NCBI GenBank assembly: GCA_044892505.1
Contig: CM097883.1
Location: forward strand, 198,896,001 to 198,960,000
Direction: 5' to 3'
Source of the DNA: Schmidtea nova
Lineage: Eukaryota
DNA length: 64,000 nt
Numbering within the stretch: position 1 is the stretch's first letter; the number at the start of each line of letters is the position of its first letter. Of this stretch, positions 14,701 to 15,663 are shown piece by piece. Both the position numbers and the translations under genes were made by a program. The notes beneath the pieces were generated by a model. It was given only the letters and a program-made list of their open reading frames with translations, did not search any database and was not told the origin of the DNA.

Positions 14701-15663
14701 TAATTCAGATATATTGTTCTTGATGAGCTGATAGGATGTCAGACGTGGGATTTGATAAATAAAATAATAAAAAATAAAAAATAATATTGGTTTTTATTTA
14801 TTTAATTCATATAATTCAAATATATAAATAATAACAAAAAATAATATTGATTTTTATTTATTTTATTTAATTCATATAATTCAAATATATAAATAATAAT
14901 AAAAAATAATATTGGTTTTTATTTATTTAATTCATATAATTCAAATATATAAATAATAATAAAAAATAATATTGGTTTTTATTTATTTAATTCATATAAT
15001 TCAAATATATAAATAATAACAAAAAATAATATTGATGTTTATTGATGTTTATTTATTTAATTCATATAATTCAAATATATAAATAATAATAAAAAATAAA
15101 ATAAATAATATTGATTTTTATTTATTTAATTCAGATATATTGTTCTTGATGAAGCTGATATGATGTTAGACATGGGATTTGATAAATAAAATAAAAAATA
15201 ATATAAAAAATAAATAAATAATAAAATAAAAAATAATATTGGTTTTTATTTATTTAATTCATATAATTCAAATAGATAAATAATGATAATAAATATAACA
15301 AATAATATTGTTTTTTATTAATTTAATTCGGATATATTGTTCTTGTTAAAGCTGATAGGATGTTAGACATGGGATTTGATAAATAAAATAAAAAATAATA
15401 TAAAAAATAAATAAATAATAAAATAAAAAATAATATTGGTTTTTATTTATTTAATTCATATAATTCAAATAGATAAATAATAATAATAAATATAACAAAT
15501 AATATTGTTTTTTATTAATTTAATTCGTATATATTGTTCTTGCTGAAGCTGATAGGATGTTAGGCTTGGGATTCGTTAAATAAAATAATAAAAAATATAA
15601 AAAATAAATAAATAATAAAAAATAAAATAAAAAATAATACTGATTTTTATTTATTAAATTCAG
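14701..15663 (+). repeat. Complex tandem array derived from the DDX3 3' splice site: four partial exon copies plus about 60-bp AT-rich units
   Basis: Copies of tattgttcttgatgaagctgataggatgttagacatgggatt at about 14709, 15135, 15332 and 15529; 14881-14940 and 14941-15000 are identical 60-mers. Confidence 0.95.

Follow-up and report, generated by a model that had tools for sequence, protein, structure and literature searches.

Copies of its own intron 2/exon 3 junction form a tandem array in a PL10/DDX3-type helicase gene of Schmidtea nova

The window considered here, namely the whole stretch of 64,000 nucleotides of Schmidtea nova DNA that was analyzed, opens within exon 2 of a gene encoding a DEAD-box RNA helicase. 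When the window was read together with upstream sequence (L013), a gene model comprising six exons was obtained, with the exon lengths summing to 2,349 nt, in frame. Exon 1 (L013:1809-2528) lies upstream of the window, and exon 2 starts 94 nt before the window (L013:9906) and ends at window position 162, such that its 3' part occupies positions 1-162 of the plus strand. Exons 3 (15664-15808), 4 (15851-15995), 5 (20407-20624) and 6 (20675-21538) follow on the same strand. Introns 1-5 measure 7,377, 15,501, 42, 4,411 and 50 nt, respectively. Comparison of the exon translations with Pfam matched the DEAD domain (PF00270) on exons 1-3 (E value of 4e-13 for exon 3) and Helicase_C (PF00271) on exons 5 and 6. 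The core motifs AQTGSGKT, PTRELA, TPGR, DEAD, SAT, ARGLD and HRIGRTGR are all readable in these translations, with the DEAD and SAT motifs being found in exon 3 and the end of Helicase_C in exon 6.

An earlier note on this DNA had called the gene a DDX3 gene, and this call proved correct. Indeed, the best matches of exons 3 and 6 identify a member of the PL10/DDX3 subfamily and the ortholog of planarian DjvlgB, and the gene is accordingly referred to below as vlgB. The top match of exon 3 was 1wrb, a chain from the crystal structure of DjVLGB of Dugesia japonica (E value of 2e-25; 47 of 48 residues, or 98%, identical), with DDX3X and Ded1 coming next and Vasa being far lower. The top match of exon 6 was DDX3X, in an alignment reaching 30 residues past the helicase core. 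As judged by such best matches, the gene is closer to DjVLGB/DDX3X than to other DEAD-box proteins such as Vasa and DDX5. For DjvlgB, which belongs to the PL10 subfamily, a C-terminal region rich in Asn has been described (PMC3373655), and Asn runs are likewise present in the tail encoded by exon 6. The DjvlgB transcript is enriched in neoblasts (PMC1896013). Exon 1, when used as query, found its best match in a 258-aa open frame (78% identical) of a 950-nt Logan contig, P0001, presumably the vlgB ortholog of a related planarian. When orthologous loci in relatives were sought with exon 6, only distant DDX3 proteins were matched.

The junction between exons 2 and 3 was read against the same D. 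japonica protein. The part of exon 2 at 1-162 aligns with DjVLGB residues 129-175 at 91% identity and ends with ...EMC, followed by the AA of a split Lys codon. The end of exon 2 corresponds to DjVLGB residue 175 and the start of exon 3 to residue 177. Because exons 2 and 3 are thus contiguous in DjVLGB, junction 162/15664 makes the conserved protein. The intervening intron 2 (163-15663, plus strand; 15,501 nt) is in phase 2, with caa/GTAAAA as donor, and contains transposon relics and two N runs.

That the helicase is essential, as also claimed earlier, could not be upheld. The genome has a second PL10/DDX3-type gene, found at C1:384962593 and 79% identical to vlgB in the exon 3 region. The corresponding intron of this paralog, identical in position and phase, measures just 41 nt. 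Because the intron of the paralog is only this long and vlgB itself has short introns of 42 and 50 nt, its intron 2, being long and filled with repeats, is taken to be a derived, expanded state, in agreement with the intron expansion reported for the larger Schmidtea genomes (PMC11410931). Part of the 15.5 kb of intron 2 is explained by transposon relics, namely an RT_RNaseH retroelement relic at 6460-6690, above the Pfam cut-off, and a weak DDE_3 transposase match at 1088-1405, below the cut-off. The two N runs are found at about 1676-1810 and at 14229-14414. In the paralog region (L016:1200-1800), the next intron begins with a (TA)n tract exceeding 120 nt. Elsewhere in the genome, at C3:25.10-26.83 Mb (L019, L020 and L014), at least 10 copies of a DDX5/p68-like DEAD-box helicase core frame were noted on both strands across 1.7 Mb. 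These frames extend up to 447 aa without stops and are apparently intronless in the matched part, such that they could represent a retrogene or transposon-carried family.

Alignment of the end of intron 2 with the true junction bore out the presence of four upstream copies of the intron end and exon start, with exon-like sequence beginning at 14709, 15135, 15332 and 15529. The copies comprise about 38-60 nt of intron end together with 48 nt from the start of the exon at 15664. Homology to the true junction is of ~90% or more from about -60 to +48, mean column identity of the five junction stretches is 92% over 100 columns, and the copies differ among themselves by 4-12%. Extension of the exon homology past +48 was considered and rejected, as matches fell to 5-6 of 10 per bin up to +80, approximately the A-rich background, and +48 was therefore taken as the breakpoint. 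No further copies were found elsewhere in the 64-kb window.

The letters of each copy are also as had been described. Copy 1 (14678-14755, plus strand) consists of a 29-nt intron-end element, in which the predicted branch A is replaced, with its AG at 14707-14708, and 47 nt of exon-like sequence from 14709. It keeps cag ahead of the exon-like part and carries a 1-nt deletion in the D-E-A-D codons, such that its translation in the exon 2 frame is KYIVLDELIGC... and reaches a stop after 25 codons. Copy 2 (15104-15182, plus strand) comprises the motif TATTGAT, a pyrimidine tract, cag with the AG at 15133-15134 and 48 nt of exon-like sequence from 15135 with two substitutions, and 18 codons are read before a stop. 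The AG is lost in copy 3 (15301-15379, plus strand), where cgg precedes 15332, and in copy 4 (15498-15576, plus strand), where cgt precedes 15529, these changes corresponding to AG to GG and AG to GT, respectively. In both, the predicted branch A is replaced by T, and the DEAD motif reads VKAD in copy 3 and AEAD in copy 4. Overall, DEAD is broken in three of the four copies and all four run into stops in the exon 2 frame. Only the 3'-most junction copy continues into the rest of exon 3 and yields the conserved protein.

Examination of the surrounding sequence revealed these copies to be part of a compound tandem array of about 1 kb, corresponding to the last kilobase of intron 2 and built of 60-bp and 197-bp units. 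TRF reported a 60-bp minisatellite at 14773-15099 (plus strand; 5.2 units, 90%), each unit of which consists of the intron-end element and a short degenerate remnant of the junction, without AG, as well as a 197-bp higher-order repeat at 15040-15630 (plus strand; 3.0 units, 93%, score 1021), in which a short unit is combined with a single junction copy and an A-rich tail. The 29-nt element from the 3' end of the intron occurs 12 times within 14678-15661, once with an internal 10-bp duplication. It is followed by exon-like sequence in five instances and by the short degenerate remnant in seven, with an AG following the element only at 14709, 15135 and 15664. The array is 87-93% A+T and the spacing between copy 4 and the true exon is 135 nt. 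The N run at 14229-14414, 260 nt upstream of copy 1, could hide further copies.

The array is confined to a single place in the genome. In a search of the whole 1.25-Gb assembly, self-matches of the array units (E values of 1e-48 to 1e-96) were restricted to this one locus. A transposon or a dispersed satellite was excluded as source, given that other hits reflected only weak A/T-rich similarity. Because the units match only their own locus, the repeat is considered to be locus-born rather than a mobile element. Moreover, the copies lie head to tail at this locus, with intronic sequence running directly into exonic sequence in each, as at the true junction, i.e., they constitute a tandem duplication across an intron-exon junction. 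Variants are shared among the units in a mosaic manner. The tails of units 1 and 2 of the 197-bp repeat are identical and their upstream parts different, and copy 4 has a TTC in common with the true exon, yet shares all of its upstream changes with copy 3. At the level of sequence, such sharing points to unequal exchange or gene conversion.

Whether the array could reflect mis-assembly, with a single junction having been inflated to several copies, was considered using sequencing runs that contain this stretch. A run search identified only four DNA-type runs, from three samples of one 2024 study, as containing it, and no RNA run. These runs, available as short contigs, were matched to 14415-16400. 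Exact contigs cover the letters specific to copy 1 (14697-14754) in X1, X2 and X3, those specific to copy 3 (15301-15377) in X1 and in part in X3, and those specific to copy 4 (15498-15575) in X1, X2 and X3. In X1, word depth over copies 1, 3 and 4 was 41.6, 40.1 and 37.1, as compared to 38.4 for the unique flank, such depth not being a copy number. Both ends of the array are anchored, with one contig (14415-14719) leading from unique upstream sequence into copy 1 and a 1,055-nt contig of X3 spanning copy 4 into the true exon and beyond (15498 to 16400). The stretch of copy 2 was treated as a repeat in the matching, such that exact-contig support covers copies 1, 3 and 4. At 15660-15708, a 61-nt contig of single-copy depth (39.7) matches except for a single letter, as copy 2 alone would give. 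High-depth joints in the reads (e.g., 15036>15472, depth of about 300, with a 22-nt side) were set aside as contigs of other repeats. The argument that differences between the copies speak against duplication by the assembly is thus sustained, as the letters that distinguish copies 1, 3 and 4 were recovered exactly in three samples and at flank-like depth. The contigs exclude duplication by the assembly and, as the samples may be of the assembly's own strain, say little on variation in the population. The order and number of the middle units are those of the assembly, as short-read contigs can prove neither. The nearby N run and the omission of the central part of the array, copy 2 among it, from contig matching would be in keeping with an artefact. 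Against these stand the exact contigs at flank-like depth, the anchored ends and the 4-12% divergence between copies, which together leave mis-assembly with hardly any probability.

To consider which copies resemble working splice sites, the splice signals of vlgB were compared. All five true donors begin with GTA and the five acceptors consist of a T-rich tract followed by AG. By our own reading, introns 2, 3 and 5 each have a yUnAy-type motif (TTGAT, CTGAT or TCGAT) at a distance of 21-28 nt upstream of the AG. The true 3' splice region of intron 2 (15633-15663, plus strand) contains the predicted branch motif TACTGAT (15638-15644, with the A at 15643, i.e., -21), a pyrimidine tract and AG. 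Copy 1 keeps the AG and lacks the predicted branch A, copies 3 and 4 have lost both, and among the seven short units, all without AG, the predicted branch A is lost in five and kept in two. Copy 2 is the sole decoy to keep a predicted branch motif, pyrimidine tract and AG. The C of TACTGAT is unique to the true site, with T being found in the 11 other elements, a change the direction of which cannot be polarised, and the true site is the best U2-type branch match among the 12. Within the 197-bp repeat, the short units carry a T>G change (15274-15275 and 15471-15472) making new AGs (caaatag) that have no counterpart in the older 60-bp units and that could be further weak cryptic acceptors.

The earlier note had proposed that selection removed competing acceptors close to the true one. 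In the decoy lineages, 14 of the 80 aligned columns from -32 to +48 vary, among them the A and the G of the acceptor as well as the predicted branch A (-21). Hypergeometric testing gave P = 0.029 for the AG alone and P = 0.0044 for the AG together with the predicted branch A, values drawn from a tiny sample of 14 variable columns and partly post hoc, given that the branch site was assigned after inspection. In addition, the cgg of copies 3 and 4 represents one inherited event rather than two independent losses, and the G>T of copy 4 came after the AG was already dead. What stands of the proposal is the enrichment of changes at splice positions, and support for selection itself is modest (P of 0.03 to 0.004, from a small and partly post hoc comparison). 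Because the disarming changes of copy 3 are also those of copy 4, the unit duplicated next to the true site was one that was already dead. The enrichment lends modest support to the idea that armed competitors may have been selected against, or that only disarmed units may have been able to amplify beside the true site.

The same G>T of copy 4, by which cag became cgt, created a candidate 5' splice site, GTATAT (15527-15532, plus strand), identical to the hexamer at the true exon 3 donor, caa/GTATAT. ttc/GTATAT at 15527 is the only GTA-type donor-like site within the array. Regulated unproductive splicing was considered, a form of the regulatory use that the earlier note had offered as a possibility for the surviving acceptors, in which exon 2 would be joined to the copy 2 acceptor at 15135 so as to include either a poison cassette or an extended exon 3, with the stop at codon 18 leading to nonsense-mediated decay and so throttling helicase output. 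The candidate cassette, 15135-15526, is of 392 nt, not a multiple of three, and its premature stop, after 18 codons in frame, was confirmed in translation. At its upstream border, the acceptor is equivalent in sequence to the true one, with branch motif, tract and AG being nearly identical, and use of 15527 as donor would leave a compact 137-nt terminal intron with the true branch site and AG. Were 15135 or 14709 to be used without this donor, exon 3 would be extended with an early stop, and either outcome would be unproductive. Autoregulatory poison exons are, moreover, typical for genes encoding RNA-binding proteins (PMC11062102, PMC11357089), and a paper supposed to describe a DDX3 poison exon was found to concern DDX31. 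The exonic side of the candidate donor is nonetheless weak, matching the U1 consensus at 4 of 9 positions, as compared to 6-7 of 9 for the five true donors by our own count, making this the poorest match among the donors of vlgB, and the array appears young and mosaic. A search for a truncated protein form with the exon 1 query (237 aa, with a form of ~338 aa in range) gave no same-species match, a blank that means little, and RNA run X19 provided only 33-nt low-complexity matches at the locus. With both sides taken into account, regulated unproductive splicing is deemed unlikely. Its fullest form, according to which a poison exon made wholly of copies of the gene's own junction (the 15135 acceptor and the 15527 donor) tunes a stem-cell PL10/DDX3 helicase, with the other copies having been disarmed by selection, is decidedly doubtful.

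The armed copies could instead act without being included, by binding U2AF/U2, engaging the exon 2 donor non-productively and slowing removal of intron 2, i.e., by intron detention. Intron detention of this type has been proposed for decoy exons in human erythroblasts. Decoy exons act in long introns (PMC6097662, PMC7373989), a class to which the 15.5-kb intron 2 belongs, and the 3' splice signals are kept in copy 2 and partly in copy 1. Most of the copies are disarmed, however, the opposite of what would be expected for a selected decoy array, and as such this explanation is thought to be very unlikely.

The favored and probable explanation is that a tandem duplication spanning the intron 2/exon 3 junction became an intronic minisatellite in which most pseudo-acceptors were disarmed and the upstream copies are non-coding relics. 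According to this scenario, a stretch of ~100-135 bp, starting at about -60 or -87 and reaching beyond the junction to +48, would have been duplicated in tandem, with additional rounds of duplication occurring by slippage or unequal exchange within the A+T-rich sequence. A truncated 60-bp unit would then have been born and amplified, after which the 197-bp unit, combining one short unit and one junction copy, would have been duplicated. The upstream copies would have been free to change without protein constraint, and at the same time would have been potential competing 3' splice sites, so that those persisting or amplified would mostly be disarmed ones. Copy 2, being fully armed, would give an early-stop transcript if used, removed by nonsense-mediated decay, such that its use would amount to splicing noise rather than to a device.

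Several points weigh against this relic explanation. That the copies are not used is an assumption. Copy 2 retains every recognisable 3' splice signal despite diverging by about 5% elsewhere in its unit, and a single G>T in copy 4 reproduces the donor hexamer of the neighbouring true exon, a coincidence that a neutral view must accept. The enrichment statistics, furthermore, concern 14 variable columns and a branch site picked after inspection.

The event is of an ordinary kind, of which this locus offers a neat instance. Duplication in tandem around a splice site has been documented as a class of event (PMC2891723, PMC4974935). As in the exon-duplication/intronization model of intron gain put forward there, a short local duplication copied a splice signal together with coding sequence and the redundant copy became intronic. 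Unlike in that model, no new intron was gained here, the duplicates instead lying inside an existing intron as a 12-element array with signals mostly lost. The locus resembles poison exons (PMC11062102, PMC11357089) in that an RNA helicase gene has an intronic, stop-bearing segment between acceptor-like and donor-like sites, although known poison exons have been demonstrated at the RNA level and usually show high conservation, whereas the segment described here is a candidate drawn from sequence and made of recent copies of the gene's own junction. As for retention-promoting decoy exons (PMC6097662, PMC7373989), cryptic sites deep within a long intron could engage the flanking sites, but most of the present copies are inactivated. 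Finally, the head-to-tail arrangement of 60-200 bp units with 90-93% identity, mosaic variants and extreme A+T content is that of intronic minisatellites, with the difference that here the unit derives from a functional intron-exon junction, including the codon block of a catalytic motif.

For the annotation of repeat-rich planarian genomes, the array calls for caution, as copy 2 was already matched by tblastn as a false DEAD-motif hit. In terms of splicing, the locus represents a natural experiment on splice-site competition, offering 12 copies of one 3' splice region with the signals intact in the true site and in one decoy. Should the armed decoy be used, the locus would document how a local duplication can give rise to control by unproductive splicing in a single step. 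A silent decoy would instead show how a perfect duplicate of the acceptor is tolerated upstream of it within a long intron.
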